64,000 nucleotides of DNA from Hyalangium minutum (GCF_000737315.1 NZ_JMCB01000003.1:496001-560000); one strand, 5' to 3'. Numbered from the stretch's first letter, positions 43,994 through 62,414 are shown. Program-made: numbers and translations. Notes: generated by a model not told the origin, from the sequence alone.

Positions 43994-45091
43994 ATGCTGC
44001 TGGGACTGACAGGGGATCCAGGGTGGCCCGCGCCCGCCGAAGCGCTGGCGAAAGCGCGTCGCTTCCTGGAGGCACAGAAGGACCGTCATGTCCTCGTGGC
44101 GCCTCATACCGACGTGGATGGGCTCTCCTCGGGAGTCTTGGCGCTGCGGGCACTGCGGACGCTCGGGGCGCGGACCACCTCGCGGCTCCCGGGCAAGGGT
44201 GAGCACGCTCACTCGCCTGCCTTCCAAGAGCGCATGGCCAAAGTGGGCGCCGAGGCGCTCGTGGTGCTCGACATGGGGAGCCGCTCCGCCCCCATCCTTC
44301 CGGGCGTGCCCACGCTCGTCGTGGACCACCACCCGTCCACGGAGTACCCGGAGGGAGCGCTGGTGCTCACCAGCTACGGCCATGAGCCCATCGCCCCCAC
44401 GAGCCTGTTGACCTATTCGCTCGTCTCGCCCCTGGTCATCCCTGGCCCACTGGAGTGGCTGGCTGTGCTCGGCACCGTGGCGGATCTCGGGGTGGATGCT
44501 CCCCTGCCCTCGCTCAAGGACGCGCTGCGACGCGCGGGGCGTAAGGCCGTGACGGAAGCCGTGGCCTTGCTCAATGCCGCGCGACGCTCGTCCCACTTCG
44601 CCGCGTCCCTGGGGCTCGAGGTGCTGATGCGCGCGGGCAGCGCCGCGGACATCAACGAGGGCCGAGTGCCCGGCGTGGACGCGCTTCGTGACTGCCGTCT
44701 GGAGGTCCAGCGCGAGGTGACCCGCTGTGCGAAGACCCCTCCCCGCTTCTCTGGGAACGTGGCGCTGCTGCTGTTCAGCTCCGGCGCCCAGGTCCACCCG
44801 CTGGTGGCGGTGCGCTGGGCCCAGCGGCTGCCCGAGCACATCGTCATCGCCGCCAACGCGGGCTATCTCCCCGGCCGGGTGAACTTCGCCGTGCGCAGCC
44901 GCGAGCCGAGGGATCTCATCGCCTTCTTGCGCGGGCTGGAGCTGCCCTTCGAGGGCGAGTACGCCCGGGGCCATGCCCAGGCCACCGGAGGCAGCCTCTC
45001 CGCCCGGGAGTTCCTCCAGTTCACCGAGGCGCTCGGCTTCCGAGGGCTCCAGGCGAACGACGTGGAGCGCCGGGGCGTCGCGCCAGGCTGA
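43994..45091 (+). CDS. DHH family phosphoesterase (RecJ-like)
   Basis: HTDVDGLSS, LDMG, VDHH, GTVAD, GHAQATG. Confidence 0.88.
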   Translation: MLLGLTGDPGWPAPAEALAKARRFLEAQKDRHVLVAPHTDVDGLSSGVLALRALRTLGARTTSRLPGKGEHAHSPAFQERMAKVGAEALVVLDMGSRSAPILPGVPTLVVDHHPSTEYPEGALVLTSYGHEPIAPTSLLTYSLVSPLVIPGPLEWLAVLGTVADLGVDAPLPSLKDALRRAGRKAVTEAVALLNAARRSSHFAASLGLEVLMRAGSAADINEGRVPGVDALRDCRLEVQREVTRCAKTPPRFSGNVALLLFSSGAQVHPLVAVRWAQRLPEHIVIAANAGYLPGRVNFAVRSREPRDLIAFLRGLELPFEGEYARGHAQATGGSLSAREFLQFTEALGFRGLQANDVERRGVAPG

Positions 45092-47615: not shown

Positions 47616-48911
47616 TCAGTCCACCGAGGCCTGCGTGGCGAAGAAGACCACGCGGCCTCCCGAGGCGGGATCCGTGACGCCACTGACGCCCTCGGTGGCC
47701 GTCCACAGGTTGGTGCCCGAGCCCGTGGCGTGCATGCCCTCGGGCATCTTCGCCCACTGGGCGCTGCCCGACAGGTAGGCCGTGCGCGAGGCGCTCGTGG
47801 ACACCTTGAAGAGCGCCCCGCCATAGCGCGTGGAGCTCAGCCAGTACGAAGTGGCCGCCGTCGAGGTCATGATCGGAGCCACGCCCTGCACGTTGGGCTC
47901 GTTCATGATGTAGGCCTTCTCAGGGGCCACCAGGCCACTCACCGTCTTCAGCTTGTTCGTGGCGGAGTCCAGCGGCCAGCGGTAGAGCCGTCCACCCAGC
48001 CCCGGCGTCGAGCCGTCATAGGGGCACGAGGTGCCGGTGTTGTTGCAGTACTCGCCCGAGAGCACCACCGGCGTGGTGCCGCGCGTGTCCTTGCCCAGGA
48101 AGGAGAACTTCGGGCGGCACGGGCTCACGGTGGCCGTGGGCACCACGTACGCGCTCACCTGCGGCAGCACGTACTTGTACCCGTAGGCGCACCACACCGA
48201 GCCCACCTTCCCGATCGCCGTCTCACACGTAGTGCTGGTGTCCACCTGGCGGATCTGCGTGAGGTCGAACACGCGGATGCCATCGGCGGTGTCGGCCATA
48301 TAAAGGTAGTTGCCGAACCAGGCCAGGCCACCGCCGTGCTCGGGGATGGTGGTGAAGTTGCCGGAGCTGGTGGGCCGCACCAGCAGCACGTGCCGGTAAT
48401 TCACCGCGCTCAGGGACATGTCCGAGATGTCCGCCACGGAGATGCGCACGCCCTTGTCCGGAGCGGCGGCCGCGTAGTGCCAGGCGACGACGGCGACGTT
48501 GGTGCTACCGGAAACGCCCGCCGTCATGCCCTGGGGGATCCACTCTGTGGTGGACATGTCCCCGTCGTTCCAACGGAAGCCGCCCTTGTAGCCCGCCGCC
48601 GGCGGGTGGTTGAGCGAGCCCAGCACAGGCCCTGCACGGTTCAGATCCAGCAGGACATCATCCAGCCCCAGTGCCGGACCCACAGGCGTCATGTACGAGG
48701 TGTAGGCGCTCCAGGTGTTCTGATCCTGCAGCTTCAGGCAGCTCGCATCGTGCGTCGCGAGCGGGGCGCCCTCGGTGAGGGCCTGCTGCACGGCCCCCGA
48801 GCCCTCCTCTGGGAGCGCCTCGGCCTCGGGGCCACACCCCGTCAGCCCCGCCCCCGCCAGACACACCGCGATGAACAGGCCTCTTCCCTCTGTGAACGCG
48901 CTCTTCAACAT
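47616..48911 (-). CDS. Secreted hypothetical lipoprotein, probably beta-propeller
   Basis: Lipobox LTGC; PQG, HGGGLAW, NVQG and MPEG blade-like motifs. Confidence 0.72.
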   Translation of the reverse strand: MLKSAFTEGRGLFIAVCLAGAGLTGCGPEAEALPEEGSGAVQQALTEGAPLATHDASCLKLQDQNTWSAYTSYMTPVGPALGLDDVLLDLNRAGPVLGSLNHPPAAGYKGGFRWNDGDMSTTEWIPQGMTAGVSGSTNVAVVAWHYAAAAPDKGVRISVADISDMSLSAVNYRHVLLVRPTSSGNFTTIPEHGGGLAWFGNYLYMADTADGIRVFDLTQIRQVDTSTTCETAIGKVGSVWCAYGYKYVLPQVSAYVVPTATVSPCRPKFSFLGKDTRGTTPVVLSGEYCNNTGTSCPYDGSTPGLGGRLYRWPLDSATNKLKTVSGLVAPEKAYIMNEPNVQGVAPIMTSTAATSYWLSSTRYGGALFKVSTSASRTAYLSGSAQWAKMPEGMHATGSGTNLWTATEGVSGVTDPASGGRVVFFATQASVD

Positions 48912-49019
48912 GTGCTCCTTGCTCGAACCGTGTCCCCATCAGAGGGCCCGAAATCACGGTTATCCCAATTTAATTGGATTTTTCCTGTTAGACTGGGACA
49001 TCACCGCCGAGGCCCTCTC

Positions 49020-50033
49020 ATGGCGCCGTCCCCCCGGAAAGCTCCCCCCACTCCCTTTGGGGACTACCTCCTCCTCGATCGCATCAGCATTGGCGGCATG
49101 GCCGAGCTCTGGCGCGCCAAGATGTTCGGGAGCGAGGGCGGCGGGCGGCTCGTGGCGCTCAAGCGGATCCTCCCGTTCCTGTCGATGGACGAAGAGTTCA
49201 TCGCGATGTTCCTGGACGAGGGGCGGCTGGGGCTCCAGCTGCTCCACACCAACATCGCGCAGACCTTCGAGATGGGACAGGTCAACTCCGAGCCCTTCCT
49301 CTCCATGGAGTACGTGGCCGGCAAGTCGCTGGGAGACATCTTCGAGCACCACCGCAAGGGGGGCGAGCCCGCGCCCCTGCCCCTGGTGCTCCACTGCATC
49401 GCGGAGATGTGCGCGGGCCTGGACTACGCGCACCGGAAGAAGGACGGCACGGGGAGAGACTTGAACCTCGTCCACCGAGGCCTCTCCCCCCACGACGTGC
49501 TGCTCTCCTTCAACGGTGAGGTGAAGGTGATCGACTTCGGGATCGCCAAGGCCACGGGCCGGGTGACGCAGACGCAGCCCGGCATCATCAAAGGCAAGTT
49601 CGGCTACATGAGCCTGGAGCAGATCGACGGCCCGGCGGTGGATCGGCGCGCGGACGTATTCGTGATCGGCGTGTGCCTCTACGAGCTGCTCACGGGCGAG
49701 CGGCTCTTCCCGGGGGATAACCCGATCGACATCATCGAGAAGATGCGCCAGATGCAGGTGGCGCCGCCGTCCCAGTTCAACGCCGACGTGCCCCAGGTGC
49801 TGGATCGGATCGTCTTCCGCGCGCTGGCGCCCAACGTGAACGAGCGCTACGCGTACGCGAGCGAGCTGGGCGACGATCTGCGGCGCTTCCTGGCCCAGTA
49901 TGGCGAGCGCTTCACGCAGGAGGATCTGCGGAAGTACCTGCGCACCACCTTCGCGCAGGATGTCCAGAGAGAGGAGCAGCGGCTGCGGGAGTACGCGCAG
50001 ATGACGCCGCCCAAGGACTTCGACTTCTCCTGA
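49020..50033 (+). CDS. Pkn-type Ser/Thr kinase domain with degenerate catalytic loop (probable pseudokinase)
   Basis: IGGMAEL, VALKRI, DFGIAK and GKFGYMS are present, but HRD...N reads HRGLSPHD. Confidence 0.88.
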   Translation: MAPSPRKAPPTPFGDYLLLDRISIGGMAELWRAKMFGSEGGGRLVALKRILPFLSMDEEFIAMFLDEGRLGLQLLHTNIAQTFEMGQVNSEPFLSMEYVAGKSLGDIFEHHRKGGEPAPLPLVLHCIAEMCAGLDYAHRKKDGTGRDLNLVHRGLSPHDVLLSFNGEVKVIDFGIAKATGRVTQTQPGIIKGKFGYMSLEQIDGPAVDRRADVFVIGVCLYELLTGERLFPGDNPIDIIEKMRQMQVAPPSQFNADVPQVLDRIVFRALAPNVNERYAYASELGDDLRRFLAQYGERFTQEDLRKYLRTTFAQDVQREEQRLREYAQMTPPKDFDFS

Positions 50034-50038
50034 GCGCG

Positions 50039-50377
50039 CTACCCGGCGAGGAGGCTGTGGGCCTCGACGGGGACCTGGGTGAAGCGCACGCCCATGCGGC
50101 TGGGGGACTGGGACTCACCGGCGGGCTGGGCCCAGACCACCTCGCCCCGGAAGGGCAGCTCGCGGCCATCGACTTCGAAGGTGCCGTGGAGCAGCGAGCC
50201 GGGGATGAAGACGAACGGAGCCTCCACGCTGAAGCCACCCGCGGAGACATCCGCGGTGTGGACCGGCAGCCGATTGCCGAGGAGGAGCGAGACACTGCGA
50301 GCGCTACGGGCAGAGCGGGAACGGAGCATGCACACATGGTGATACATCCCTGTGGCTCCGCAAGTTTCCCGCTCCAC
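50039..50377 (-). CDS. PilZ domain protein (start uncertain)
   Basis: DVSAGG, GEVVW and MGVRF beta-barrel motifs. Confidence 0.75.
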   Translation of the reverse strand: MERETCGATGMYHHVCMLRSRSARSARSVSLLLGNRLPVHTADVSAGGFSVEAPFVFIPGSLLHGTFEVDGRELPFRGEVVWAQPAGESQSPSRMGVRFTQVPVEAHSLLAG

Positions 50378-50451
50378 CCTTCTCTTCCTCCGGTCTCATC
50401 CCCTCTGAGAGATTGTTCGGTCCCGGCATGTTGCCGGGCGGTCCATGAATG

Positions 50452-50964
50452 TCAGCGAGGCTCTGGCTCAACCGGCTCCTTGAGCCTCTGAAGAGGGACT
50501 GCGTCCCGGCTCTTGGGGACAACGTGGGCACTGACCAACCACTTCCCAGAAGGATCCCCTCCTACAATAAGCAGGATGGGTTCAGGGCAGCGATAATCCG
50601 CAGTGCTTGCGATGATCTCGAGTTGCTGAAGATCTGTATCGCTCGGCACCGGCGCAGCGTAGGGGTGGAAGTGCCACTCACCCAGATAATGGGCACCACG
50701 TGAGGCCCAGCGGCGATCGAGCCATCTCTGGAGACCTCTCGTGCCACGCTGGAACCAGCTTGGCCCGCGAACCGAATCTACGGGGGAGCCAGACGCAGCA
50801 CTCACCCGAGCACAATCGAGCGCGGCGGAGTACACCCCCACGAGGATGCCTCCCGTCTCTTTCCTCCACGAAGAGCGGCACAGGTGGAGAAGCCGCCGGA
50901 CGGTGGCCCCTGGGATATGCACACCGAAGCGGGCATCCGCAGAGCGAAATTCAAGATCGGGCAT
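50452..50964 (-). CDS. cap3: CBASS Cap3-type JAB/Mov34 peptidase
   Basis: ETGGIL, YLGEWHFHP, PSDTD; follows the E2-E1 gene. Confidence 0.9.
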   Translation of the reverse strand: MPDLEFRSADARFGVHIPGATVRRLLHLCRSSWRKETGGILVGVYSAALDCARVSAASGSPVDSVRGPSWFQRGTRGLQRWLDRRWASRGAHYLGEWHFHPYAAPVPSDTDLQQLEIIASTADYRCPEPILLIVGGDPSGKWLVSAHVVPKSRDAVPLQRLKEPVEPEPR

Positions 50965-52783
50965 GGGCTTCCACAGGGGACACATGGTTCACTCCGCGGA
51001 AGAAGTCGTTGTGTTCATCACGCTCATAGACATCAAGACGCGCGGCAGGGCGCGCCGTTGCCGCCTGCACCAGCGACTTCACTGCGATAGCAGCGGCCAA
51101 CGCCACGTCATCCGCCCGAGCAGGAAAGACGGGATGCCAGCAACCGAGTCCCTCCCTGGGAAGATTGGTGCGCTTGAGCTCGTCGTGCTCCAGGCGGATC
51201 CACGACCCGGCCTGCTTCCAGAACTCCTCGAACGGAAAAGAGGTGCCCGTAGCGCTGAAGCACAAGAGACGCCGGGCCCTCACACCAAAGGAAGTGGAGA
51301 AGAACAGGCGGGACGCTTCCCAGGCAAACCGGTGCAGCGTCTCAAGGACCTCGTCCGAGGCGGTACAGTCCAGGATCGTGTCGCAACGAGATACGAGCCA
51401 AGTGCTTCGAGCCATTTGATCGTCTAACTGTTTCCGAAAGGCATGGACCTGCAGGTCCGGATTGAGGGTGCGCAGATGATGCGCGAGCGCCTCGGCCTTG
51501 GAATACCGGACATCCGTTACGTCGAGTGTGTGGCGGACGAGATTCCCGGCTTCGAGAGTTTCTCCATCCAGAATGACTAGGCGGGAGACGCCGCCACGGA
51601 CGAGCAATTCCGCCATGGCGGAGCCCAGAGCCCCTGCGCCAAGCAACAACACCCATGAGCTTCGCAGCGGCTCCGGCAGCGCTCCACGGCTCCGCAAATC
51701 TTCGGGCGCCCAGTTTTCAGTGCGGAGCCAGTGAATCGGACGTGCTTTCTCGAACAGATTGACCTGATCGTAGAGCCAATACCCCTGCTCGTTACGGCGG
51801 TAGCCGCGCGGAGCCAGGTCGCCATGGGCGAAGATTGGCAGCCGAAGCGCCCACCAATGCATGCGCACGTTCGGCCCATCGATCTTCTCCGGAATCGGAA
51901 AGCCGATGAGGCACAGGTGGCGCTCGCCATCCCGGAGCTTCGAGGAAAAACCCTGAAGCTCCTTTCGGAGCTCCAGTCCCCGGGACCGAAGCGCCTCCTC
52001 CAGCTCGGGCCAGCACGTGGGAGGGGCATAGGGGGACAAAACTGGGAGCGAGTCACACCGCATCCACGGTACACGGAAGCGTCGTCGTCGAGACCTTGAG
52101 CGGAACAGGTCTCCCCAGTCGAGCGAGACCAGCCGCCGGCCGTCGAGCGAGGAGAACGCATCGACAACACACAGCCGCGGGTTTCCAGGAACCGTGACCA
52201 AGTCCGCCCATCCCCGCGACTCTTGGCACTTCATCCAAGTGCCAAGTTCCCCAGGTCTCTCCCTGAAGACCACTTGCAAGGTTCCGTCCGTGGGCAGGTC
52301 GGGCAGTTCAAAGGCGTGACCTGGGGCGAGTAGACGGCCTTGGGCCGCAGCTTCAAGCCAGTCCCGTGCGCCCTTCACGTGCCACGCGAGCCGTGCCTCA
52401 GGGCTCCGGGGTTCCTCCTCTCTTGCCCGCAGTCCAAGCGCTGCAAGCCCTGTCTGCAGACACAGCCGCCCTTCCCGCCACGGCCGAGCTGCTGGCCCTG
52501 GATTGTTCAGGCGTTGGTGCGGATGCGTGCCCTCGATTCCACCCTTCTTGGAGGGGAAGAAGTCGATTCGTCCCCAGGGATAGTGCGCGTCGATGAGCGC
52601 ATACCAGTCCGTCCATGCGGGGATGGAGCTCCCCGTGGTGTCCGCACGAAGGCGCAACGGGAGGACCCAACACTGCTCCTCTGAGTCCCAGTCCACGTCT
52701 CCGAGCAGTTCCACTCCGGCTATTCCATCCAGGACACGACGGCCCAGGCGGAGTGAGTCCGTCAGCGAGGGCGCGTCTGTCAC
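50951..52783 (-). CDS. cap2: CBASS Cap2-type E2-E1(ThiF) fusion
   Basis: N-terminal E2-like region (YPWGRIDFFP, HQ, GRLCL); ThiF LLGAGALGS, DGETLEAGNLVRH, DCTA; C-terminal GCWHPVFPA. Confidence 0.92.
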   Translation of the reverse strand: MTDAPSLTDSLRLGRRVLDGIAGVELLGDVDWDSEEQCWVLPLRLRADTTGSSIPAWTDWYALIDAHYPWGRIDFFPSKKGGIEGTHPHQRLNNPGPAARPWREGRLCLQTGLAALGLRAREEEPRSPEARLAWHVKGARDWLEAAAQGRLLAPGHAFELPDLPTDGTLQVVFRERPGELGTWMKCQESRGWADLVTVPGNPRLCVVDAFSSLDGRRLVSLDWGDLFRSRSRRRRFRVPWMRCDSLPVLSPYAPPTCWPELEEALRSRGLELRKELQGFSSKLRDGERHLCLIGFPIPEKIDGPNVRMHWWALRLPIFAHGDLAPRGYRRNEQGYWLYDQVNLFEKARPIHWLRTENWAPEDLRSRGALPEPLRSSWVLLLGAGALGSAMAELLVRGGVSRLVILDGETLEAGNLVRHTLDVTDVRYSKAEALAHHLRTLNPDLQVHAFRKQLDDQMARSTWLVSRCDTILDCTASDEVLETLHRFAWEASRLFFSTSFGVRARRLLCFSATGTSFPFEEFWKQAGSWIRLEHDELKRTNLPREGLGCWHPVFPARADDVALAAAIAVKSLVQAATARPAARLDVYERDEHNDFFRGVNHVSPVEAHARS

Positions 52784-53874
52784 GCGAACCTACCGCTGCC
52801 CACCATTCCCGGCCCTCCCTGGTGCGGTGTGAAGTTTCCTTGTGGGGGTGAGCCGCGCCCGGGCTCCGGGGCTCGTGGGAACTTGTCGCCAAAGAGCTCT
52901 CGCCATAGCGGCGCCGCCGTCTGCGCATCGGGTGCCTCGAAGGCTTGGCGTGCCTTTTTCGCGGCAGCGGCCACCTGCGCATGGAACTTCGCGAAGTCGT
53001 CACCGCTGATACGTGCCATGACGTTCTGATCCACACCCCGGTCTGGTGCGTAGGGAGCGTGCGTATTGGCGGCATGCAATGCGTAGCTCTGAGTGAACCG
53101 CTCCAAAGTCCGGACCACACCCTCGGCCACGGACGAGATTCCGTCCGGGCAGCAATCGCCGATGAGGTGCTCCAGTGGATAGCTCTTGGGCCGGTCAGGC
53201 AGTGCGCCCGCGTGAACAAGCCGCCACCACTTGAGGGCCTTCACGACGTTGACGAAGTGCCCCGAGCACCGGGCGTTCTTTTGGCTCGTCCAGCTCAGCT
53301 GTACCAGCGGGTGGGTGTCCTGCCACGCGCCCAAATCCCGGTCCGGAATCCGTAGCGGCTCCGACTTCCACTGAGGGTTGCCGTTCGAGTCTGTCTTGAC
53401 GATCGGCTGCGACTCGTCCTCTTCGATCTGGAGGACGTCCTCGCTCTTGGCGAACGCGCTGTAGACACCAGCCTCGGCTTCCACCGGCGCGGCAGTAATG
53501 ACGAGGTCCATCTCCACGGTGGACATCACGATGCCGAAAGAGCGGCCCTGCTGCCGGTACTTGTCGTGGTAGTACTTCTCGAGAAAGGGCCTGAAGCAAG
53601 CCATGGCCTCAGCGGGCGTGAACTCGGACTCCTTCATGCGGGTCACAACGATGAGGTCGACATCCGCCTTCTTGCCGTCCTTGGGCCGGACCGCTGTGCG
53701 GCGCTTGTAGCTGCCCTGGAGGAACATGCTCACGAAGCCTGTCTTGAGCTGCGCGTCCGACTGCAGGCGCTCCTTCAGCCTGGAGTACCCATCAATCATC
53801 TCGGCACGCTGGGCTTTGGTCGGACGGATGTCTTGGAGGAAATCAGCGAAGTAGGTGGGAAGGGGAAGTGTCAT
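52780..53874 (-). CDS. cGAS/DncV-like nucleotidyltransferase (CD-NTase 1, Cap2-associated, 364 aa)
   Basis: FLQGSYKRRTAVRP...ADVDL, MDLV, VKALKWW, PKSYPLE; C-terminus ...GSGRFA. Confidence 0.93.
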   Translation of the reverse strand: MTLPLPTYFADFLQDIRPTKAQRAEMIDGYSRLKERLQSDAQLKTGFVSMFLQGSYKRRTAVRPKDGKKADVDLIVVTRMKESEFTPAEAMACFRPFLEKYYHDKYRQQGRSFGIVMSTVEMDLVITAAPVEAEAGVYSAFAKSEDVLQIEEDESQPIVKTDSNGNPQWKSEPLRIPDRDLGAWQDTHPLVQLSWTSQKNARCSGHFVNVVKALKWWRLVHAGALPDRPKSYPLEHLIGDCCPDGISSVAEGVVRTLERFTQSYALHAANTHAPYAPDRGVDQNVMARISGDDFAKFHAQVAAAAKKARQAFEAPDAQTAAPLWRELFGDKFPRAPEPGRGSPPQGNFTPHQGGPGMVGSGRFA

Positions 53875-53935
53875 GGCACATGGATCACGAATGGCGCGGC
53901 ACTTGTTACATGCGCCGCCATGGCTTTCCTGAGGC

Positions 53936-55387
53936 TCAGCGCGAAAGCCGGTCCACGAGCCGCACCGCCGGGTCTCCCAGCAGGGTGTAGCTTGTGAGGT
54001 CGTGCCGCTCCATCCACAGGTGGGCTCGCTCCGTGGTCCGCTCTTTGGCCTGCTCCTCGTCAATCTCTCCGGACAGCGACTGACCCGAGGAGCCAGCTGC
54101 GGCGGTCTCTTGGTGATACTTCCGAAGTTCCCTGTCTGCCTTCGAGGCAAAGCGCGACAGGGAATGAAGCGCGAGCCCCACCCGGGAGCCCTCCACCATG
54201 GTCGTCAGCACATCCTCCAGCCGGTGGGTATGCGTCTCCCCGTTCCGGGGATTATGGAAAGCGCAGATCCATGCCATGTCCAGGTGGCCGATAACAGCGA
54301 GGGGCCCTTTGGGATTGGCCAGCGCTGCTTGGGGCAATGCTGCGATAAAGGGCCGCGCATCTAGGGGGCGGGACCGATCGACACGCTCCAGTACCCATTG
54401 CGACATCACGCTCGTTTGGACGAGTTGCTCCATCCAGGGCCGGAACACGCTCCGCGTCGGCGTGCCCGCGCCGAAGCAAGCAAAGTAGAACCAGATGCCT
54501 CCCGGCAGGAACTCCTTCTGACGGACCTCGTCGGCAGTCAATGCGGTTCCCTGGCCGAACCACATGTTGCCCTGCTCCCGCCTCTGCGCTTCCGGGCTCA
54601 CCCAACCCGAGGTTGGCGCCCCAACGCCATGACTCAAAGTGAAGAGCAGGCCAGGCTCCGGAGCACGGACCAGTTCCAGCAGCTTTTCTTTGGCGCCCGC
54701 GGGCAACTGCTCCACCGTCAGGGAACTCGCCGGAAAGTATCCCTTGTCGCGAGCCTCCGAGCACCGCTGTGCCGCCGGAGCGACGACGAACCTGTGGCCG
54801 CTCAGCACCGGGGGCGACATGTCCTGCGCCGTCAAAAATACAGCCCGGGCCTGCTGAGGACGTGCCGCATCCCGCTCACGGGTCAGCACCTTCTCAACAT
54901 AAGCTGCGTAGTCGTCCTCTCGCTCGAAGGGCAGGCGCCCCACGAGGGTGACGCCTTCGCCCGTCAGTTCCTCCTGCAGTTCCATCGAGAGATCTTCTGG
55001 TGTCCCAGCGAGCAGCACGTAGCTGGCGTGCTCTCGCGAAGACCGGGACGTCGGGTACATCGTGTCGGCCAGGAACTTACGTGCCTCTTTCTCATTCATC
55101 CCCGGAGGGGCACGGTAAATGTCCACGCTCCGGCGCTGCTCTTCCGCACGACGCTTGCAAAGCGGCGAGAGGATGGCTTCGAGGCGCCGGCCTCTCTCGT
55201 TGTCAGGAACTACGAGCGCCCATCTCTGCTCCTCGAGCGAGTTCGGATCGGCGGACAGGTTGTACAGGTGGGTGGGCTTGGGCAGGGGCACTGGAAGCGG
55301 TGCCTCCCACAGGGACTCCAGCGGAAGAGGCATCTCGATGACGGGGCGCCCGTCTCCTGCCTGTGCGAGCAATAGCTGCAGTGTCAC
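53936..55387 (-). CDS. Gingipain(C25)-like clan CD cysteine protease
   Basis: YVLLAG, VGRLPF, TLSHG (His), YFACFGAG (Cys), AVIGH, LLGDP. No obvious signal peptide. Confidence 0.75.
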   Translation of the reverse strand: MTLQLLLAQAGDGRPVIEMPLPLESLWEAPLPVPLPKPTHLYNLSADPNSLEEQRWALVVPDNERGRRLEAILSPLCKRRAEEQRRSVDIYRAPPGMNEKEARKFLADTMYPTSRSSREHASYVLLAGTPEDLSMELQEELTGEGVTLVGRLPFEREDDYAAYVEKVLTRERDAARPQQARAVFLTAQDMSPPVLSGHRFVVAPAAQRCSEARDKGYFPASSLTVEQLPAGAKEKLLELVRAPEPGLLFTLSHGVGAPTSGWVSPEAQRREQGNMWFGQGTALTADEVRQKEFLPGGIWFYFACFGAGTPTRSVFRPWMEQLVQTSVMSQWVLERVDRSRPLDARPFIAALPQAALANPKGPLAVIGHLDMAWICAFHNPRNGETHTHRLEDVLTTMVEGSRVGLALHSLSRFASKADRELRKYHQETAAAGSSGQSLSGEIDEEQAKERTTERAHLWMERHDLTSYTLLGDPAVRLVDRLSR

Positions 55388-55740
55388 TTCTTCCCTCCCT
55401 TGCCGTCTCCCTTGCTGTCTCCCTTGCCTTCCTTGATCCCAGGACGGCTGGTGCTGCCCGCTTTGTCTCCTCCCGTGTTGGTATCGGTCGGAGGCATGCC
55501 GTAAGTCACCCGCGCTCCCTCGGCCTTGACCTGCGCCACAAAGCGGTCGAGATCCGCGAGCGACCCCTGGACTACAAAGATGACCTGCGGCTGGTCATCC
55601 ATCACCCCATAGGCAGTGAAGCTTCCCTCCTCGCGCGACTGGACGATGTAAACGTGACGCCCTTCCTCTGGATACCCCTCGAAGAACGGCTTGCTATCCC
55701 ACTTCGAAAAATCCAGCGGCTCCACCGACTCACCCGTCAT
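55384..55740 (-). CDS. Small hypothetical protein (118 aa) with Gly/Lys/Asp-rich tail
   Basis: GGAGG RBS before ATG 55740; stop overlaps the next GTG. Confidence 0.75.
   Translation of the reverse strand: MTGESVEPLDFSKWDSKPFFEGYPEEGRHVYIVQSREEGSFTAYGVMDDQPQVIFVVQGSLADLDRFVAQVKAEGARVTYGMPPTDTNTGGDKAGSTSRPGIKEGKGDSKGDGKGGKK
55396..55431. repeat. Three 12-bp near-tandem repeats encoding the (D/E)-x-K-G tail
   Basis: TCCCTTGCCGTC, TCCCTTGCTGTC, TCCCTTGCCTTC. Confidence 0.8.
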
Positions 55741-55787
55741 GACGCCTCCCTGTTGCATGATGACTGCCGCGATGCGGCAGCAAGCTC

Positions 55788-58757
55788 TCACTCGAACACC
55801 AAGACGCCATTGATCCAGTCGGAGTCTTTACCCCCGCGCAGCCACTCGAGGCGTTCGTCGCGAGTAGCAATGCTAGGAGACGCACCTGCCCGGATGCGCT
55901 CGCGCACACTGCCGAAGAAGTCGGATGCGTCCTCGTTGGGGATGGGCTGGGTCGCAGCCAGCACCGTGCGTGCCCCCGCAGTGAGAAAGGCGTTGGGTAG
56001 GCTGCCATGCTCATGAAGGGCGGAGGTTCCGCGCGCGGCCTCGCAGGCCGCCAGGACGACCAGAGGCGCACTTGGGAGCTTCAGCTTGCGAATGCGGTCC
56101 TCGTAAAGCTCATCACTGCCATCCGACCCTGGGGCCAACAGCAAGTAGGCTGTGTTCGAGCCCGGATCGATCTGACCGTGCGTCGCCAGGTCGATTTCCG
56201 TCGCCTCTTGCAAGGCCGCCAGCACGCGGTTCGGGGTGGCATCCAAGTCCCGCAGGGTCCGAAGTGACGCGCCCGGCGCCACATGGGGCGACCACGTCAG
56301 TGAGAGTTGACTGCGTTGCTCGTCGTACCGGACCTCGCTCACCACGACGTGCACGCTGAGCCCTTGCGGAGGTTGGGGCGAAGTGGACCGCGTCCGGTAC
56401 CGCCAGGCGAACTCTGGAGGAAGGAGTCCAGCGCGTCCCTGCAAAGGAGGCCGGGCCAGGACATCCACCGAGGCACAGGGTCTGAGGGCCTCCACCATGT
56501 CCTGGGGTACGACTCCCGCCAAGCTCGTGGGTTCGAACCTCTCACCGCGCACGGGGGCGTATTTGCTCATCCACTGCCCCTCCGAGCCCCGCGCCACCAA
56601 CAGGCTTCGCTCGGTATCCTCAGTGAGCGCGAGGACGCACCGCGCCGGTACAGCGAGGCCCAACTCCGAGCCGAAGAGCCCCAGCGCCGCCGCGAAGTCG
56701 CTCTTCGCGGCGGCGGCGAAGATGAGGGACGTGTAGCTGTAGGCACGGGCATGCCTTGCCGTGACATCATCCGGCGACGCGGAATCCGCCTCGTGGATGG
56801 CCTCTTCCAGCAGCGCACGTCCCTTAATGGCATCCACCTCCACCAGGAAACGCCCCTGAAGGAACTTCGCGTAGGCCTGCTGCCCCAGGGTGTTCCCTGG
56901 CTCCAGCGCCAGCGCCTGCTCCACGGCCGCAGCGTCTCGGGGAGAGCGACGCGTCCGGGCCACGTCCACCAGAGCTTCAATGCCATGCCACGTGAGTGGC
57001 AATCCAACAGCCATGGCTTGATCCAGTTCGGCCCGCGCGTCATCCAACTCCAACGCCTGAATGGCCAGATGGGCGAGGTTCTGATGGATGTTGCGCGCGC
57101 TCTTCGAGTCGCCCTCGGACATCAAGAGAGCCTCGCCGAAGTAAGCACGGCCCAGTGTCACGTCCGCCGCCAGACGCGCGGCGTTGCCCAGCGTCTGCAG
57201 CAGCACTCGCTCCCGATCCCACTGGGCCAGCCGGGCCAATGCCAATCCAGCGCGGGCGTGCCGCTCGGCATCGCTGACCTGAAAGAGCCAGCCAAACACG
57301 TGGGACAAATCGTTCTCAACATCAATGCACCGATAGACCAGTTGCTCTCTCTTGCAGAGGTCGAGCGCCTCCTCGAGGAGTTTCTGCGCCCGGGTGTAGC
57401 GCTCCTGTTCTTGTTCCCGCGATGCCTCCACCTGGAGTCCCAGAACCCGGAACCAAGGGTCCGGGTGAGCACGGGTCCGCTCCACGAGCTTGCTGGCGTA
57501 TTGAGGACGGTGCTGGATGAGGTACGTGAGCGCGCCTAGAGCGAGATCGTCCTCACGCGACGCGAGAAACTTCTGGAGCAGCGCCTCCTCGTCGCGCGCT
57601 TCCACCTGCCCATTCATCAACTGGGCATATTGGGCCGCCAGCGGGGCGCGGACCGAGAAGTCCCGTGCGGCGATGCGCTGCACGTACTCCGCGAGCACCG
57701 TGCCGCCTCCCACGCTCTCATCCAGTTTCCTGGCCAAGGGAAGGAACTCGCGAACTTCCGCAGCGGACGTCCGGGCACGCACAGCGTGATAGAAGTCACG
57801 GCGCATCAACGGAACGTCTGCATAGAGAAGCGCCTGCGACAGTGCGGGAACGCCTCGGGCAATGAGCTCGCCTCCGGCTGCATCTGCTTTCTGCCAACGC
57901 TCCTTTCTCTGCAAGGCGCCGGAAAGCCGCTCCCTCTTTGCCCGGGCCTCGTTCCGCCAGCGCTCATCAGGCTCGGTACGCTCCAGCGACTCCAAGTCCG
58001 CCATGGCTGACAGGGGCAGCCCCAGGTCCCGGAACACCAGGGCACGGTTCCAACGCGCCTGGACGTGACCCGGCTCCCTGCGAAGCACCTCATTGAAAAG
58101 ATGGAGCGCTTCCCGGAACTCCGCCATCGCGCTGGAAACCTCCTGGGACCGGGCGGCCACATAGTGCGCAACCCCCAGGTCACAGAGCACGTTCGCGTCC
58201 CATTTGCGCTCGCTCCGCATCCGCTTCAGGAGCACCTTGGCACGCGCGGTATCGGGTGCGCCGCCCGCCAAGTAGGCCGCAGCCAACTGAGGCAGATCCC
58301 CCCGTTCCTCCAACTGCCCCATGACAGCGTGAGAGAACCCATTCACATTCGAAGTGGGTGCGGAGCCCATGGGAATCTGGGCCAACGATCGGTAGGTGTC
58401 CGCCTCTGGATACGTGACGCGTGCTTCCAGCGTCCGCTGCTGCCGCGCCCACAGCGCGGGCTCCACTCGCGATACGGACTTGCCCGTGAGGCCCAAAGCG
58501 AGCAGCAGCACGGCGGCAACGGATACCACCGCCGCACTGGCCGCCAACCACCGGTTCCGCGGAACGGCGTGCCAAGGCACCTCTACCGGGCCATGCCGCT
58601 CCAGGTAGCGCTTGCCGAGTTGTTCAAGCTGCAGCAGCCGAGTCAGCTCTGCCTGGCACCGCTCACACCCTGCCAGGTGCTTGCCGAAGGCCTGGGCGTC
58701 TGCTGGCGAGAGTTCTCCATCCGCGAAGGACTGGAGTGGGTCGCAGGGAGAGGACAT
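55788..58757 (-). CDS. Zinc-finger anti-sigma (zf-HC2), hydrophobic segment, TPR and CHAT protease fusion (989 aa)
   Basis: HLAGCERC (Hx3Cx2C); LAASAAVVSVAAVLLLALGL; TPR-like ARWNRALVFRDLGL; CHAT LATHG and VLAACE. Confidence 0.88.
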   Translation of the reverse strand: MSSPCDPLQSFADGELSPADAQAFGKHLAGCERCQAELTRLLQLEQLGKRYLERHGPVEVPWHAVPRNRWLAASAAVVSVAAVLLLALGLTGKSVSRVEPALWARQQRTLEARVTYPEADTYRSLAQIPMGSAPTSNVNGFSHAVMGQLEERGDLPQLAAAYLAGGAPDTARAKVLLKRMRSERKWDANVLCDLGVAHYVAARSQEVSSAMAEFREALHLFNEVLRREPGHVQARWNRALVFRDLGLPLSAMADLESLERTEPDERWRNEARAKRERLSGALQRKERWQKADAAGGELIARGVPALSQALLYADVPLMRRDFYHAVRARTSAAEVREFLPLARKLDESVGGGTVLAEYVQRIAARDFSVRAPLAAQYAQLMNGQVEARDEEALLQKFLASREDDLALGALTYLIQHRPQYASKLVERTRAHPDPWFRVLGLQVEASREQEQERYTRAQKLLEEALDLCKREQLVYRCIDVENDLSHVFGWLFQVSDAERHARAGLALARLAQWDRERVLLQTLGNAARLAADVTLGRAYFGEALLMSEGDSKSARNIHQNLAHLAIQALELDDARAELDQAMAVGLPLTWHGIEALVDVARTRRSPRDAAAVEQALALEPGNTLGQQAYAKFLQGRFLVEVDAIKGRALLEEAIHEADSASPDDVTARHARAYSYTSLIFAAAAKSDFAAALGLFGSELGLAVPARCVLALTEDTERSLLVARGSEGQWMSKYAPVRGERFEPTSLAGVVPQDMVEALRPCASVDVLARPPLQGRAGLLPPEFAWRYRTRSTSPQPPQGLSVHVVVSEVRYDEQRSQLSLTWSPHVAPGASLRTLRDLDATPNRVLAALQEATEIDLATHGQIDPGSNTAYLLLAPGSDGSDELYEDRIRKLKLPSAPLVVLAACEAARGTSALHEHGSLPNAFLTAGARTVLAATQPIPNEDASDFFGSVRERIRAGASPSIATRDERLEWLRGGKDSDWINGVLVFE

Positions 58758-59299
58758 CAGTGAGTTCCCTCATCGAGGTAAGGCTTGAGCAACTCGCCGA
58801 GCCTCTGGCGAGCATCGAACAACCGCTTGGCCACGAGTCCAGCAGACACGCCCAGCTTGCTGGCGATCTCCTGGTTGCGCAGTCCCTGGGAGCGGAGCAG
58901 AAAGGTGAGCCGCTGCTGCCGGGGCAGCTTCTCGATGGCCCACTCGAAGCGCTCCCGGGTGATGCGCTCGTACGTGTCCGAGGCCGCTCCCTGTCCCAGC
59001 GTCCAGCGGGTGATGGTCGGATCGTCTTCTGCCTTCTTCCGGCCCATGGTGCCTCGGATCAGGTCATAGAAGTGATTGGTCATGACGGTAATGAGCCAGC
59101 CATCCACTGGCTCTTCGTCCGCCTGGAGCGCTCCAGTGAAGCGCTCGACGAAGCGCAGCAGCGCCTCCTGGACCAGGTCTCTGGGTTCTATGCCCCCGAA
59201 GGCGCGACACAGTTTCTCGGCAATGGGCATCAGCAGCGCGTAATGCTTGGCGTGCCACTCATCGAAATTGCTGGCCACAATCTCCCCGGCGCTCTTCAT
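58757..59299 (-). CDS. ECF (sigma-70 group 4) sigma factor
   Basis: DLVQEALLR, WLITVMTNHFYDLIR, region 4 GLRNQEIASKLGVSAGLVAKRLFDARQRL. Stop overlaps the anti-sigma start. Confidence 0.93.
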   Translation of the reverse strand: MKSAGEIVASNFDEWHAKHYALLMPIAEKLCRAFGGIEPRDLVQEALLRFVERFTGALQADEEPVDGWLITVMTNHFYDLIRGTMGRKKAEDDPTITRWTLGQGAASDTYERITRERFEWAIEKLPRQQRLTFLLRSQGLRNQEIASKLGVSAGLVAKRLFDARQRLGELLKPYLDEGTH

Positions 59300-59381
59300 G
59301 ACCGTGTCTCCGGTCCGTCCCCAATAAGGACACGGAGGGCACATGAATTATTACGTCCCGACATGCGGGCAGCAGGGAGGA

Positions 59382-61331
59382 TCATGAGCGGCGCCCGGCT
59401 TTGCGCGTGACGCATCCAGACCAGGGGACCTCCACATAGCCCTCGGACCTCCGGAAGTTGAAGAGCTTGAAGGTGGGATGCGTTTTCGGGTTGTAGACCC
59501 TGCCCAGTGCTGCTGCCAGACTGGCCGGACACGCCAGCGCGAGCCACACCTCTTGAACGTCTGGCCATTCAGCGCGGATGCGCTCCAGACATGTGCGGAA
59601 CTCCTCGACGGCATGTGCCGTGTCCAGAGGTCCTCGCAGCACCGTAGGTGAGGGCCCACGGGCTGCCACCAGGCGCACCAGCGCGGGAGGTGCCTCGGTC
59701 CCCAGCCACCGGGCCAGTTCCTCGGAGTGGATGGACAGGTTCACCTCAAGGGTCATGGCCAGGCGTCCCCCCGATGCGCGTCCGGCCTCGGGAGCCGGCC
59801 AAGCCTCCTCCCGGAAGAACTTCTCCTCAGAAGAAGGCTGCTGCATGGAGTCGTAGCCACAGGTCCAAACGCCGGTGCGTCCTCTTTGCTCCTGGTACAC
59901 GCTCAGCTTCCACCGGCTCAACCGCCACCCCAGATGGAACATGAGCGGCAAGGGGGCACGCCCGAAGAGGTGCACCTTTGAAACGTGTGTTCCAAGCGCG
60001 TCTACGAGCTGATCGGCCTGATCGAGTGCGCGCCGCCACTCCCGGGAGGTGGCGGGCAAATCATCCCTGACCTTGTCAAAGGGCTGCAGCACGACGACAT
60101 CCGGATCCTCACCGGCCTCTCCTTTGAGCGCCTCGATGATGGAGGCATGCGCCACGTTGAAGTTCACCTCGTAGGCCACCACGAGTTCCTCCGGAAGCTC
60201 GGGGAGCGGCGTGTCTGGCGAGAACACTATGCGTTGCCCGCGCGCACGGGCCTCGGGCGGAGACTGCGCAAAGAACTGGAGCGATGCCCAGTCGAGGGAC
60301 GACGCACTCAGTACCTCATGGGCTTTCTGAAAGGCTTCGTAGATGGGGACATTCTGTCCGCAGAGAGCTTGGTAGAACGCCCCCGTCATCTGTACAGAGC
60401 CGTTGATGCTCAGGGGCATCTGCGATGCGATGACCGCTGGGATGCCGAGGCGGTGAAGGTCGTGGGCCACCCCTCCAAACATGCTCCCCACCTGACCAGG
60501 ATTACCGCCGTGACATGCGCTCAGCACGATTGCCTGTAGATCCCGGTGATAGGGACCCAGCACATCGCGAAGGCTGTCTCCATCAATCCGCGTGGGTCTG
60601 CTCGGCCGATGGGGATCTTTCCAGCTCAGTCCAAACGTTCCTCCGGGAACTGGGCCTCCGTGACACAGGATGTGGAGGATGCGAAACGGCTTCCCCTCTT
60701 GGCGTGCCTTTTTCAACCTGCTGCGAAGCGAATCCAGGGTCACATCCTTGAGTGCGTCCTGATCCTGATTGAAGTCGGGACACGCCTTCTGGATGGCGGA
60801 GAGATGGCGGTCCTCCTCGACATCCCCCTCCGCGTCGGACCAGGCGAACAGAACCCGGCCATGGCGGTGGGAGGCCGGGGGAGTCAACGTGTTGTGGGCC
60901 CATTCGAACTGCAGGGGATGCGGCGCGATCGTGCCAAGGCTTCGGCCTCCATGGCTGAGCGAAGTCAGTGACCAGGGGAGGCTGAACAGTTCCCCTGCGC
61001 TGAAGCGAAATAGCAGCCGACGAGGTGTGTGCGTTTCCTCGGCCTCAAGTAGAGCGTTCTCGTAGGCCTCCCAGCCCTCCAGTTCTTTCAGCACGTCCTC
61101 GAGAAATCTGCGCAGCAGATCACCCATCTGCCTTCGTACGGAGGAGGAGGGATCCGGGCGCAAGAACTCCGAACGAAGCGTCTCCACCTTGTCCCATGCG
61201 AGAAGGGCCGCCCCCAGCTTCCCCTTCGCACCTCGCGCGAAGTACTGCTGGGGCCTTCCATCAAACGCATAGGGCTCGTTCGGCCTCTCCGAGCGGCCCA
61301 ACTCGATTGTCAGCGTGCGCAGTCCAGGCAT
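59382..61331 (-). CDS. CHAT protease-SAVED sensor fusion (649 aa)
   Basis: CHAT: ELFSLPW, LHILCHG, VLSACHGG, AVIASQMP. SAVED: VHLFGRAPLPLMFHLG, VYQ, VWLALACPASLAAALG, GYV. Confidence 0.9.
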   Translation of the reverse strand: MPGLRTLTIELGRSERPNEPYAFDGRPQQYFARGAKGKLGAALLAWDKVETLRSEFLRPDPSSSVRRQMGDLLRRFLEDVLKELEGWEAYENALLEAEETHTPRRLLFRFSAGELFSLPWSLTSLSHGGRSLGTIAPHPLQFEWAHNTLTPPASHRHGRVLFAWSDAEGDVEEDRHLSAIQKACPDFNQDQDALKDVTLDSLRSRLKKARQEGKPFRILHILCHGGPVPGGTFGLSWKDPHRPSRPTRIDGDSLRDVLGPYHRDLQAIVLSACHGGNPGQVGSMFGGVAHDLHRLGIPAVIASQMPLSINGSVQMTGAFYQALCGQNVPIYEAFQKAHEVLSASSLDWASLQFFAQSPPEARARGQRIVFSPDTPLPELPEELVVAYEVNFNVAHASIIEALKGEAGEDPDVVVLQPFDKVRDDLPATSREWRRALDQADQLVDALGTHVSKVHLFGRAPLPLMFHLGWRLSRWKLSVYQEQRGRTGVWTCGYDSMQQPSSEEKFFREEAWPAPEAGRASGGRLAMTLEVNLSIHSEELARWLGTEAPPALVRLVAARGPSPTVLRGPLDTAHAVEEFRTCLERIRAEWPDVQEVWLALACPASLAAALGRVYNPKTHPTFKLFNFRRSEGYVEVPWSGCVTRKAGRRS

Positions 61332-61336
61332 GGTTC

Positions 61337-62218
61337 CTACCGGACTGGGTAGTCCGTCCCCAACAACTCCCGCCAGAGTTCGTTCGCGCCAGGCATGTCG
61401 ACCCGCCGCTCAAGTTCCAGCGCTCGGGCCGCCTTGCGTGAGGCGCCCGAAAGCCGCTGCTGCCCTTGCTGAAGATGCCCCTCCCCTACTCCGGCATTCA
61501 CAGGAGGCCCGAGCCCAGCGGGATCCTTCCAGTCAGCCCGGATGTGCTCGCTCATGAACTGAAACAGATGCGCCATGCCCTGCGCGTAGACGGACGGGTG
61601 GGACTCCGGCTGGAACGAGGCAATGCCCTCGTAGGCCATCACCTCCAGCAAGAACGACGGCACCGGCTTGCCTTGGAGTTGGTTCCAGCGCTTGATGGCC
61701 TTGATGAGCGGCTTCAGCCGCTGCATCGCTTTCCTGTTCGCCTCGTCACAGGCCGCGATGTGCTTGCGCGGATTGCTCCGGATCCACTGCCCCAAGCGCA
61801 TATCGGGAATCCAGTAGATGCCCGGCTGGCGCAGATCTTCGAACGCGGGGACCACATCGAAACCGATGCCCGTCCCGGAGAACTCAATGTTGACCGAGCG
61901 GTTTTGCAGTCGCGGTTGCTTGCCGCGGAACTCCTTCCGCAGCGCTTGCGCGACGCGCTCGAGAAACTCTTGTGGCTGCAGGACCTTTCCGTTTCCGCTC
62001 GAGTCCGTCGTGAAGATGAGGAAGAGGTCGATATCGTGCAAAGGCCGGATGGCCGTATTCCGTCCATACGAGCCACTGAGAATGGACTCCCGCGGGCTCA
62101 GATGGTGACGCAACGCATCGAAGACGACCCGCTCCTGACGCTGCGCCTCGCGGTTCTCACCTTCGCGGAGCTCTAGGTCCTGCATGAACTGCTCGAATGA
62201 CTGCGCCACAGTCGGCAT
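61337..62218 (-). CDS. Second CD-NTase/SMODS nucleotidyltransferase (293 aa)
   Basis: LSGSYGRNTAIRPLHDIDL, FDVVPA, NPRKH, LIKAIKRWN, SFLLEVMA. Confidence 0.92.
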   Translation of the reverse strand: MPTVAQSFEQFMQDLELREGENREAQRQERVVFDALRHHLSPRESILSGSYGRNTAIRPLHDIDLFLIFTTDSSGNGKVLQPQEFLERVAQALRKEFRGKQPRLQNRSVNIEFSGTGIGFDVVPAFEDLRQPGIYWIPDMRLGQWIRSNPRKHIAACDEANRKAMQRLKPLIKAIKRWNQLQGKPVPSFLLEVMAYEGIASFQPESHPSVYAQGMAHLFQFMSEHIRADWKDPAGLGPPVNAGVGEGHLQQGQQRLSGASRKAARALELERRVDMPGANELWRELLGTDYPVR

Positions 62219-62414
62219 CGTTGGTGTCTCCTCTCTTGCTAAGAGACACGAAGGAGACCGCAGGCATTACATCTGCTGAGCACAGCAAGCCGACAATTCC
62301 TGGACTACATTGCCCCACCTCCTTCGCGCAGGGCGTCCAGCGCGAGGAGCAGGAGAGAGCAAATTTCCCGCTCTCCCCCTCCCCTTCAGCTCAAGGCCGC
62401 GCGAGCGTCTCCGC

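Follow-up and report, generated by a model that had tools for sequence, protein, structure and literature searches.

A two-cyclase CBASS locus of Hyalangium minutum corresponds in protein sequence, gene order, and promoters to the DdvS/DdvA-regulated island of Myxococcus xanthus

What kind of defense system places two CD-NTase cyclases, three proteases, and a sigma factor of the extracytoplasmic function (ECF) class with its anti-sigma factor in a single run of genes? The question is raised by a 64,000-nucleotide stretch of Hyalangium minutum DNA (GCF_000737315.1, NZ_JMCB01000003.1:496001-560000; the whole stretch is called the window below), in which positions 50452-62218 hold nine co-oriented minus-strand open reading frames (ORFs), closely spaced or overlapping. 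An earlier interpretation made from the DNA alone, here called the sequence-only reading, saw in them an undescribed antiphage signaling system of the kind based on cyclic oligonucleotides (CBASS), built around a protease cascade. The arrangement had in fact been described: Fig. 1A of PMC11506125 gives exactly these genes in the same order for Myxococcus xanthus, and, judged by sequence, the window copy is an orthologue in another myxobacterium. The explanation that best covers all of the evidence, and in which we have good confidence, is an orthologue of the M. xanthus DdvS/DdvA CBASS island in which the sigma factor stands upstream of nucleotide signaling and a CHAT-SAVED protease may act on a C25-like protease.

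Domain identities come from Pfam, PADLOC, and NCBIfam scans of the window proteins. In transcription order, the genes are as follows (aa, amino acids).

61337-62218, minus strand: CD-NTase2, 293 aa; SMODS 2.8e-24, PADLOC cyclase 4.8e-85, NCBIfam CBASS_cyclase_b 197 bits; orthologue MXAN_7291, 56% identity
59382-61331, minus strand: CHAT-SAVED, 649 aa; CHAT 2.6e-16, SAVED 5.1e-26, PADLOC SAVED_CHAT 4.9e-83; orthologue MXAN_7290, 58% identity
58757-59299, minus strand: ECF sigma factor (DdvS orthologue), 180 aa; Sigma70_r2 and r4_2, TIGR02937; MXAN_7289, 75% identity
55788-58757, minus strand: anti-sigma factor (DdvA orthologue), 989 aa; zf-HC2, TPR, and C-terminal CHAT; MXAN_7288, 64% identity
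55384-55740, minus strand: 118-aa protein without a Pfam, PADLOC, or NCBIfam match
53936-55387, minus strand: C25-like protease, 483 aa; weak Peptidase_C25 match, 1e-5; orthologue MXAN_7287
52780-53874, minus strand: CD-NTase1, 364 aa; PADLOC cyclase 1e-138, C terminus GRFA; orthologue MXAN_7286, 76% identity
50951-52783, minus strand: Cap2 (E1/E2 fusion), 610 aa; PADLOC E1-E2 2.9e-203, ThiF 1.4e-23; orthologue MXAN_7285, 63% identity
50452-50964, minus strand: Cap3 (JAB isopeptidase), 170 aa; PADLOC JAB 4.1e-49, Prok-JAB 5.7e-10; orthologue MXAN_7284, 70% identity

CD-NTase2 and CHAT-SAVED are 5 nt apart, and 82 nt separate CHAT-SAVED from the sigma gene, whose stop codon shares 1 nt with the anti-sigma start codon. 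The 118-aa gene begins 47 nt further on, and its stop codon runs 4 nt into the C25-like gene; CD-NTase1 follows after 61 nt and overlaps Cap2 by 4 nt, and Cap2 overlaps Cap3 by 14 nt. The sequence-only reading had therefore placed and identified all nine genes correctly, with no gap above 82 nt, and was also right that His and Cys are kept in all three proteases, whose dyads are intact and invariant among relatives, and that the locus holds no nuclease, phospholipase, or TIR effector; Pfam and PADLOC find none of these, nor a pore-forming effector. It overlooked the transmembrane helix of the anti-sigma factor and the three promoters that depend on the sigma factor, as well as the fact that such a locus had been published.

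Island counterparts were located via contigs encoding homologues of the C25-like protein, including MXAN_7287 of M. xanthus. Each of the nine window proteins has one tblastn match in the M. xanthus locus (L003), collinear and at 54 to 76% amino acid identity, and this holds even for the small gene, which is unannotated in the DK1622 record. A Vitiosangium locus matches all nine collinearly at 70 to 80% identity, and the window proteins are closest overall to those of Hyalangium, Archangium, and Vitiosangium (70 to 80%). The order of the nine genes is not a product of chance, as it is found again in M. xanthus DK1622 and in no fewer than nine further genomes at species level.

In M. xanthus, MXAN_7291-7276 constitutes a DdvS/DdvA-regulated CBASS-CRISPR-Cas defense island (Bernal-Bernal et al., NAR 2018, PMC6061681, and Sci Adv 2024, PMC11506125; PDB 8ROT, 8RW5, 8RLZ), described as having four parts, among them a type I CBASS (CD-NTase and CHAT-SAVED) and a type II CBASS (CD-NTase, E1/E2, and JAB) (PMC11506125). 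The DdvS regulon is essentially this gene set (PMC6061681). When derepressed, the island protects against phage Mx4 and not against Mx1, and the Mx4 resistance that follows ddvA deletion or ddvS expression is abolished by deletion of the locus (PMC11506125). Transcription that depends on DdvS and on CarD-CarG, and protection from phage on derepression, are known for M. xanthus alone (PMC6061681; PMC11506125). The window shares with this island its nine genes, their order and orientation, the architecture of the anti-sigma factor, the catalytic and zinc-binding residues, and three GTAA-N16-CGT promoters before the same three operons. Unlike the M. xanthus island, it lacks type III-B cmr genes, a CRISPR array, and a fourth promoter after Cap3, and has a convergent Ser/Thr kinase gene in their place: MXAN_7283, Cmr1, Cas10, Cmr3, and Cmr4 gave no tblastn match in the window, and no CRISPR-like array was found there. 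The type III-B module is also missing from several orthologous islands. At the sequence level, then, the locus has every feature of the M. xanthus island except the adjoining CRISPR-Cas module.

The promoters suggest one regulator for the three operons. Those of the window are as follows.

62248-62270, minus strand: P1, DdvS-type ECF promoter GTAATGCCTGCGGTCTCCTTCGT, an exact GTAA-N16-CGT, upstream of CD-NTase2 and 29 nt from its start codon
59332-59354, minus strand: P2, autoregulated DdvS promoter GTAATAATTCATGTGCCCTCCGT, before the sigma gene
53887-53909, minus strand: P3, DdvS-type promoter GTAACAAGTGCCGCGCCATTCGT, upstream of CD-NTase1 and 12 nt from its start codon

Counted over its two strands, the window has four exact copies of the motif, against about 1.08 expected by chance. 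All three minus-strand sites lie 12 to 32 nt upstream of operon starts (CD-NTase2, sigma, and CD-NTase1), and that strand has no others; the sole plus-strand match (57141-57163) is antisense within the anti-sigma gene and is probably a chance occurrence. An ATG at 59344 falls inside P2, and we therefore place the start of the sigma protein at 59299 (MKSAGE...). Ten orthologous loci carry the motif at the P1, P2, and P3 positions, with essentially no further copies except for a fourth site where extra genes follow Cap3. In M. xanthus, four DdvS-dependent GTAA-N16-CGT promoters are inactive as long as DdvA is present and functional; dependence on DdvS is experimental for P_MXAN_7291 and P_MXAN_7286, and the CD-NTase2/CHAT-SAVED operon stays silent until DdvA is removed, with 572-fold and 285-fold induction (PMC6061681). 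The suggestion that the sigma factor induces the second CBASS is thus borne out, since DdvS drives the promoter before MXAN_7286-7284 (PMC6061681) and the same motif precedes CD-NTase1 in the window.

Downstream of Cap3 the window has no fourth promoter, even with one mismatch allowed, and in view of the missing fourth site, Cmr homologues, and CRISPR array we regard it as the three-operon core without optional cargo. Elsewhere a fourth GTAA-N16-CGT site lies at the Cap3 end (L003 14887; L005 14143, minus strand; L008 14888; L009 12702; L017 11940), and what follows it varies: the cmr operon and CRISPR4 in M. xanthus, one more CD-NTase in a metagenome-assembled genome (MAG) of Archangium, and a SAVED-domain protein of 481 to 489 aa in Corallococcus exercitus and a Myxococcaceae MAG. 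Only in C. exercitus does a third CBASS, a CD-NTase/ThiF pair, stand behind this site. In C. exercitus AB043A (L009 11464-12210), CD-NTase1 and the N-terminal part of Cap2 are missing, in what looks like a deletion that kept P3. MXAN_7283, the first annotated cas gene of the cmr operon (L003 14918-15649), resembles (2e-22) an ORF of the Myxococcaceae MAG (L017/L086 12950-13978) that overlaps the SAVED-domain gene after Cap3; it is also similar to the start of Cmr1. The convergent kinase gene of the window (47730-50033, plus strand; kinase domain at residues 452-708) is separated from Cap3 by 418 nt. Its PADLOC matches to PD-T4-6 (1e-58) are generic kinase matches, and a role in the system like that of the kinase PCk of Haliangium is not supported: it has no DdvS motif, lies on the opposite strand, and keeps its place next to the island in just one close relative (L020, an Archangium MAG).

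How tightly the regulatory block is tied to cyclases can be judged from a survey in which one genome per species was scanned with an alignment of the C25-like family. It returned 77 loci, all from Myxococcota, whose ORFs were searched with the window proteins within a 10-kb neighborhood, with representatives checked by Pfam. The block of sigma factor, DdvA-like anti-sigma factor, and C25-like protease occurs at 20 loci, with the small gene at 19 (no homologue was found in L033). Nine of the 20 have the full nine-gene form, and 4 have a single CD-NTase-Cap2-Cap3 set plus CHAT-SAVED (L026, L055, L057, L075). In another 3, there is no CD-NTase but a second CHAT protein is encoded, a STAND NTPase fusion in L029/L082 and L076 and, in L030, a protein whose C-terminal domain lies beyond the end of the contig; in the remaining 4 (L027/L084, L028/L083, L078, L033), neither a second CHAT protein nor a CD-NTase lies within range. 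A second, cytoplasmic CHAT-sensor protein thus adjoins 16 of the 20 blocks. The sequence-only reading had asked whether the block occurs mostly without CD-NTases, as it would if it had been inserted here by chance; it does not, as 13 of the 20 have CD-NTase neighbors, and the link is not obligatory, as PMC11506125 likewise states.

Where the sigma factor stands in the pathway depends on its anti-sigma factor. The window protein matches chain B of PDB 8ROT, the cryo-electron microscopy (cryo-EM) structure of DdvA, end to end (1361 bits), and also the nuclear magnetic resonance structure 8RLZ. Its residues C5, H27, C31, and C34 (zinc-binding anti-sigma, or ZAS, domain) and H860 and C905 (CHAT dyad) are invariant in 19 to 20 of the 20 relatives, the dyad in all 20. 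We read a hydrophobic stretch at about residues 70-92 as a transmembrane helix, so that by sequence similarity the protein consists of a cytoplasmic ZAS domain, a single transmembrane helix, and a periplasmic TPR-CHAT region, with the compartments taken from PMC11506125. DdvA itself is a single-pass membrane anti-sigma factor (PMC6061681). Cryo-EM of DdvA-DdvS shows a periplasmic TPR-CHAT dimer with a fold resembling Csx29 and separase, and DdvA without this domain is cleaved by RseP; the authors proposed that a periplasmic cue leads to CHAT autoproteolysis in trans and then to intramembrane cleavage by RseP (PMC11506125). The three-protease cascade of the sequence-only reading would thus not run in a single compartment, given the periplasmic location of the anti-sigma TPR-CHAT region seen in 8ROT.

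These data support a model in which membrane-bound DdvA would hold DdvS through its cytoplasmic ZAS domain until DdvA is inactivated, by the proposed periplasmic cue, and DdvS is freed. Free DdvS would then transcribe CD-NTase2 and CHAT-SAVED from P1, its own operon (ddvS, ddvA, the small gene, and the C25-like gene) from P2, and CD-NTase1-Cap2-Cap3 from P3, so that the sigma factor acts upstream, arming an otherwise silent island and amplifying its own expression. The gene-regulatory steps have been demonstrated for the M. xanthus orthologue and are mirrored, as sequence features, in the window.

The opposite direction of signaling had been suggested, with a phage-activated CD-NTase causing CHAT-SAVED to cleave the cytoplasmic part of the anti-sigma factor and release the sigma factor, in a CBASS version of CalpL-CalpT-CalpS. 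Adjacency of a sensor-linked protease, a sigma factor, and an anti-sigma factor, as in the CalpL and Craspase systems, speaks for this route, as do the recurrence of a cytoplasmic CHAT-sensor protein beside most DdvA-like blocks and the instability of the cytoplasmic DdvA domain when exposed (PMC11506125). As a primary trigger, however, it is unlikely, because expression of CHAT-SAVED needs DdvS in the first place and its operon is silent without induction, because Mx4 fails to induce ddvS in the wild type, which is as sensitive as the locus deletion (PMC11506125), and because TPR-CHAT is periplasmic, leaving only about 70 anti-sigma residues in the cytoplasm. The block also exists without any SAVED protein, and the Haliangium SAVED-CHAT cleaved neither the sigma factor nor PCi (10.1101/2023.06.23.546230). 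Whether taken as primary trigger or as a positive-feedback amplifier, we consider the route quite improbable.

If the sigma factor arms the island, the two CBASS modules would supply the response. CD-NTase2 and CHAT-SAVED, a sensor-effector fusion, lie 5 nt apart under P1 without Cap2/Cap3 or HORMA/TRIP13 and form a type I CBASS, whereas CD-NTase1, Cap2, and Cap3 share one operon with overlapping genes, the core of a type II CBASS. The structures closest to CD-NTase2 are nucleotidyltransferase chains (6P8U/6P82/6P8J, 5e-33), and CD-NTase1 aligns nearly end to end with chains named Cyclic AMP-AMP-GMP synthase (7LJL, 7D48, 7TO3; 2.4e-88). We take the 7LJL-type and 6P8U/6P82 chains to be the CdnD cyclic-trinucleotide synthases of Enterobacter cloacae and Pseudomonas aeruginosa. 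From these closest solved relatives, both window cyclases plausibly make cyclic trinucleotides. A conserved C terminus such as GRFA is expected of a Cap2 substrate in type II CBASS, and the GRFA terminus of CD-NTase1 is conserved in nine orthologues. Compared with the type II CBASS of E. cloacae (CdnD-Cap2-Cap3-Cap4), the cyclase match, the Cap2 E1/E2, the Cap3 JAB, and the small-residue C terminus are shared, but the window operon has no effector gene and an ECF sigma factor controls the entire system. Nothing follows Cap3 on the minus strand, 50034-50451 being intergenic, and the sole SAVED sensor of the window is that of CHAT-SAVED, which belongs to another operon and has a cyclase of its own there. 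In this protein an N-terminal CHAT protease precedes the C-terminal SAVED domain, and the dyad H224/C273 is invariant in 43 of 43 sequences.

Once expressed, both cyclases would respond to phage, with Cap2 and Cap3 modulating CD-NTase1 through its GRFA terminus, and the cyclic oligonucleotides would activate CHAT-SAVED, the only cyclic-nucleotide sensor in the window, to cleave its targets. It is also conceivable that the locus is a set of independent defense modules that share a regulator without cross-talk between their proteins, the type II CBASS having its effector encoded elsewhere. Unrelated systems are often juxtaposed in defense islands, and the separate SAVED-domain protein after Cap3 in C. 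exercitus and the Myxococcaceae MAG indicates that a type II module can have an effector of its own. The window module has none, however, and conservation of the nine-gene order with all three promoters in at least 10 species, together with the recurrence of CHAT-sensor/C25-like pairs in different contexts, makes independence improbable.

What CHAT-SAVED might cleave is suggested by Haliangium ochraceum, where in a type III-B system a SAVED-CHAT protein activated by cyclic triadenylate (cA3) cleaves and activates PCaspase (Steens et al., 10.1101/2023.06.23.546230; Science 2024). The same study noted SAVED-CHAT relatives in Myxococcota within CBASS-like operons that also hold thiF, a sigma factor gene, and two or three cyclase genes. 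In both loci a SAVED-linked CHAT protease is accompanied by an ECF-like sigma factor, by a small protein, and by another cysteine protease of clan CD, and the window protein, too, fuses a SAVED sensor to a CHAT domain with an intact dyad. The differences are substantial. The domain order is inverted in the window, where only the SAVED part matches 8TL0, and weakly (1.3e-5); the second protease is gingipain-like C25 (H253/C304) rather than a C14 PCaspase (H79/C146); a membrane anti-sigma factor stands in place of the kinase PCk; the small protein has no detectable likeness to a known inhibitor fold; and the signal comes from CD-NTases, not Cas10.

By its predicted structure, the product of 53936-55387 is a gingipain-like cysteine protease (C25, clan CD) and not a homologue of the C14 PCaspase. 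The AlphaFold model has a predicted local distance difference test (pLDDT) score of 90.8, and its best Foldseek matches are the gingipains Kgp (4RBM, 2e-9) and RgpB (1CVR, 6e-8) over the full length (about 465 columns), with caspases, separase, Craspase, and SAVED-CHAT matching more weakly. The dyad H253/C304, in a C-terminal catalytic domain, is invariant in 20 of 20 relatives. More than 700 homologues were found, and all those with an organism name are from Myxococcota. Because residues 1-10 are conserved and confidently modeled (mean pLDDT 91) and show no signal-peptide features, the protein is probably cytoplasmic. A nucleotide-sensor domain in its N-terminal half was considered and rejected, as the whole protein aligns with the two-subdomain catalytic unit of gingipains and its Foldseek matches to periplasmic binding proteins are weak (template-modeling scores of 0.15 to 0.2).

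The 118-aa protein, which may regulate the C25-like protease, combines an alpha/beta core of about 85 aa with the conserved motif PPxDTNTGGDKAxxTSRPG and a disordered tail of basic character, whose Gly/Lys-rich sequence is encoded by a 12-nt tandem repeat at 55395-55428. Only 21 close homologues were found, and at the survey loci it occurs only alongside a DdvA-like gene. Its AlphaFold model (pLDDT 72) has no significant Foldseek match (best E value 0.076, to ribosomal proteins), leaving identification as a PCi- or CI-2-like inhibitor unsupported. In one Hyalangium and one Archangium genome, a single gene encodes two tandem copies of the whole core (P0121, P0122).

In the model we favor, the most likely target of CHAT-SAVED would be this co-induced cytoplasmic gingipain-like protease, serving as executioner much as PCaspase does in Haliangium. 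We propose this mainly because CHAT with interchangeable sensors recurs beside the C25-like family. A close paralogue of the window CHAT domain lies in the neighborhood of 26 of the 77 loci (single-pass phmmer, E value of 5e-32 or better); iterated jackhmmer gave 41 of 77, a count that may hold clan-CD cross-hits, and we relied on the former. These CHAT domains are fused to SAVED or to nSTAND1/WD40 STAND NTPases. In L055 and L075, paralogous clusters with a single cyclase, CHAT-SAVED is the immediate successor of the C25-like gene, with CD-NTase-Cap2-Cap3 behind it. Keeping the partner protein constant while a protease domain takes on exchangeable sensors is typical of protease-activated effector modules (10.1101/2025.11.14.688446). 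That CHAT-SAVED cleaves and activates the C25-like protease, by analogy with Haliangium, is nonetheless put forward tentatively, as an idea to which we would not quite give even chances.

Outside the DdvA-like block, C25-like proteins adjoin CHAT-nSTAND1(-WD40) STAND NTPases in L087 (10001-18176) and also in L034, L049, L076, L081, and L082. Those beside CHAT-nSTAND1 often have a C-terminal helix-turn-helix extension of about 80 aa, and in L087 a metallophosphoesterase-like gene lies between the two genes. Such pairs look like a family of sensor-protease/effector modules, here seen only in Myxococcota. In many Sorangium, Minicystis, and Polyangia loci (L014-L016, L019, L021, L023, L042, L060, L063, L066, L068, L071, L081), two C25-like paralogues lie a few kilobases apart. 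A literature search on the combination of gingipain, CHAT, and STAND found nothing relevant.

Several observations weigh against the pathway drawn here. The block of sigma factor, anti-sigma factor, small protein, and C25-like protease also occurs without a CD-NTase or SAVED protein within 10 kb (L083, L084, L078), and for that reason the protease may belong to the sigma module and not to the CBASS. It is not homologous to PCaspase and has no sequence match in the PDB, where fold comparison alone is informative. The literature searched holds no experiment on CHAT-SAVED substrates, the role of the C25-like protein, or the cyclase products, and no functional assignment for the CHAT-SAVED targets, the protease, or the small protein.

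The first of these points is the starting place for a different account, in which the C25-like and 118-aa proteins serve the sigma/anti-sigma module, for example, by removing the released ZAS fragment or by cleaving DdvS to end the response, and CHAT-SAVED kills by cleaving other cellular proteins. It would fit with the four genes forming one operon under P2, with their staying together in 19 of 20 DdvA-like loci, some of which lack a CBASS, with the restriction of the small protein to loci where a DdvA-like gene is present, and with the cleavage of an associated sigma factor by the Haliangium PCaspase (10.1101/2023.06.23.546230). We nevertheless judge it unlikely. The majority of C25-like loci (57 of 77) have no DdvA-like gene and many are paired with CHAT-STAND NTPases, as suits a protease-activated effector, and deletion of MXAN_7287-7284 in a ddvA deletion background left DdvS-dependent CRISPR RNA production unchanged (PMC6061681).

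Returning to the island as a DdvS-armed CBASS with a possible CHAT-SAVED to C25-like step, its relation to other protease-linked systems can be stated. CalpL-CalpT-CalpS and Craspase (Csx29-Csx30-CASP-sigma) share with it the linkage of a nucleotide- or RNA-activated protease to a sigma/anti-sigma pair. The window, however, has neither a Lon protease (CalpL is a Lon-SAVED protease, and the anti-sigma factor it cleaves is soluble) nor a gRAMP; its anti-sigma factor is membrane anchored with a periplasmic CHAT domain of its own, and its sigma factor stands upstream, not downstream, of the nucleotide-signaling genes. In its mode of action the locus resembles the systems of SAVED-CHAT/PCaspase, CalpL, and Craspase, yet it belongs to none of them, as features that define them are absent.

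Other parts of the window hold further genes of interest. A possible second, unclassified defense system lies at a distance of about 35 kb from the island (3762-15430, plus strand, and 15136-19500, minus strand). It includes large ORFs of 1200, 1080, and 1607 aa in succession. Pfam and PADLOC identify neither of the first two, whereas PADLOC strongly matches the third, a helicase of the DEAD/SNF2 type, to DpdJ (6.6e-68) and DruE; a DDE transposase-like ORF adjoins them on the other strand. A full-length homologue of Peptidase_M2, the angiotensin-converting-enzyme family (41986-43995, minus strand; E value of 5e-234), is followed by a vWA/YfbK protein (45759-47606, plus strand).

The locus is no new kind of system; it offers useful comparative material for the published one. 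Viewed across species, the conserved unit is the nine-gene, three-promoter core, and the CRISPR-Cas genes of M. xanthus are one of several optional cargoes behind a fourth promoter. More speculatively, and as a proposal that we think somewhat less likely than not, proteins of the C25 fold may represent a second family of executioner proteases, so far confined to Myxococcota, for which one CHAT subfamily with interchangeable sensors (SAVED in CBASS, nSTAND1/WD40 STAND NTPases elsewhere) would act as the switch and a single CHAT-SAVED would read two cyclases. The recurrent pairing of C25-like proteases with CHAT-sensor proteins supplies a definite hypothesis, open to direct testing in a model organism amenable to genetics.

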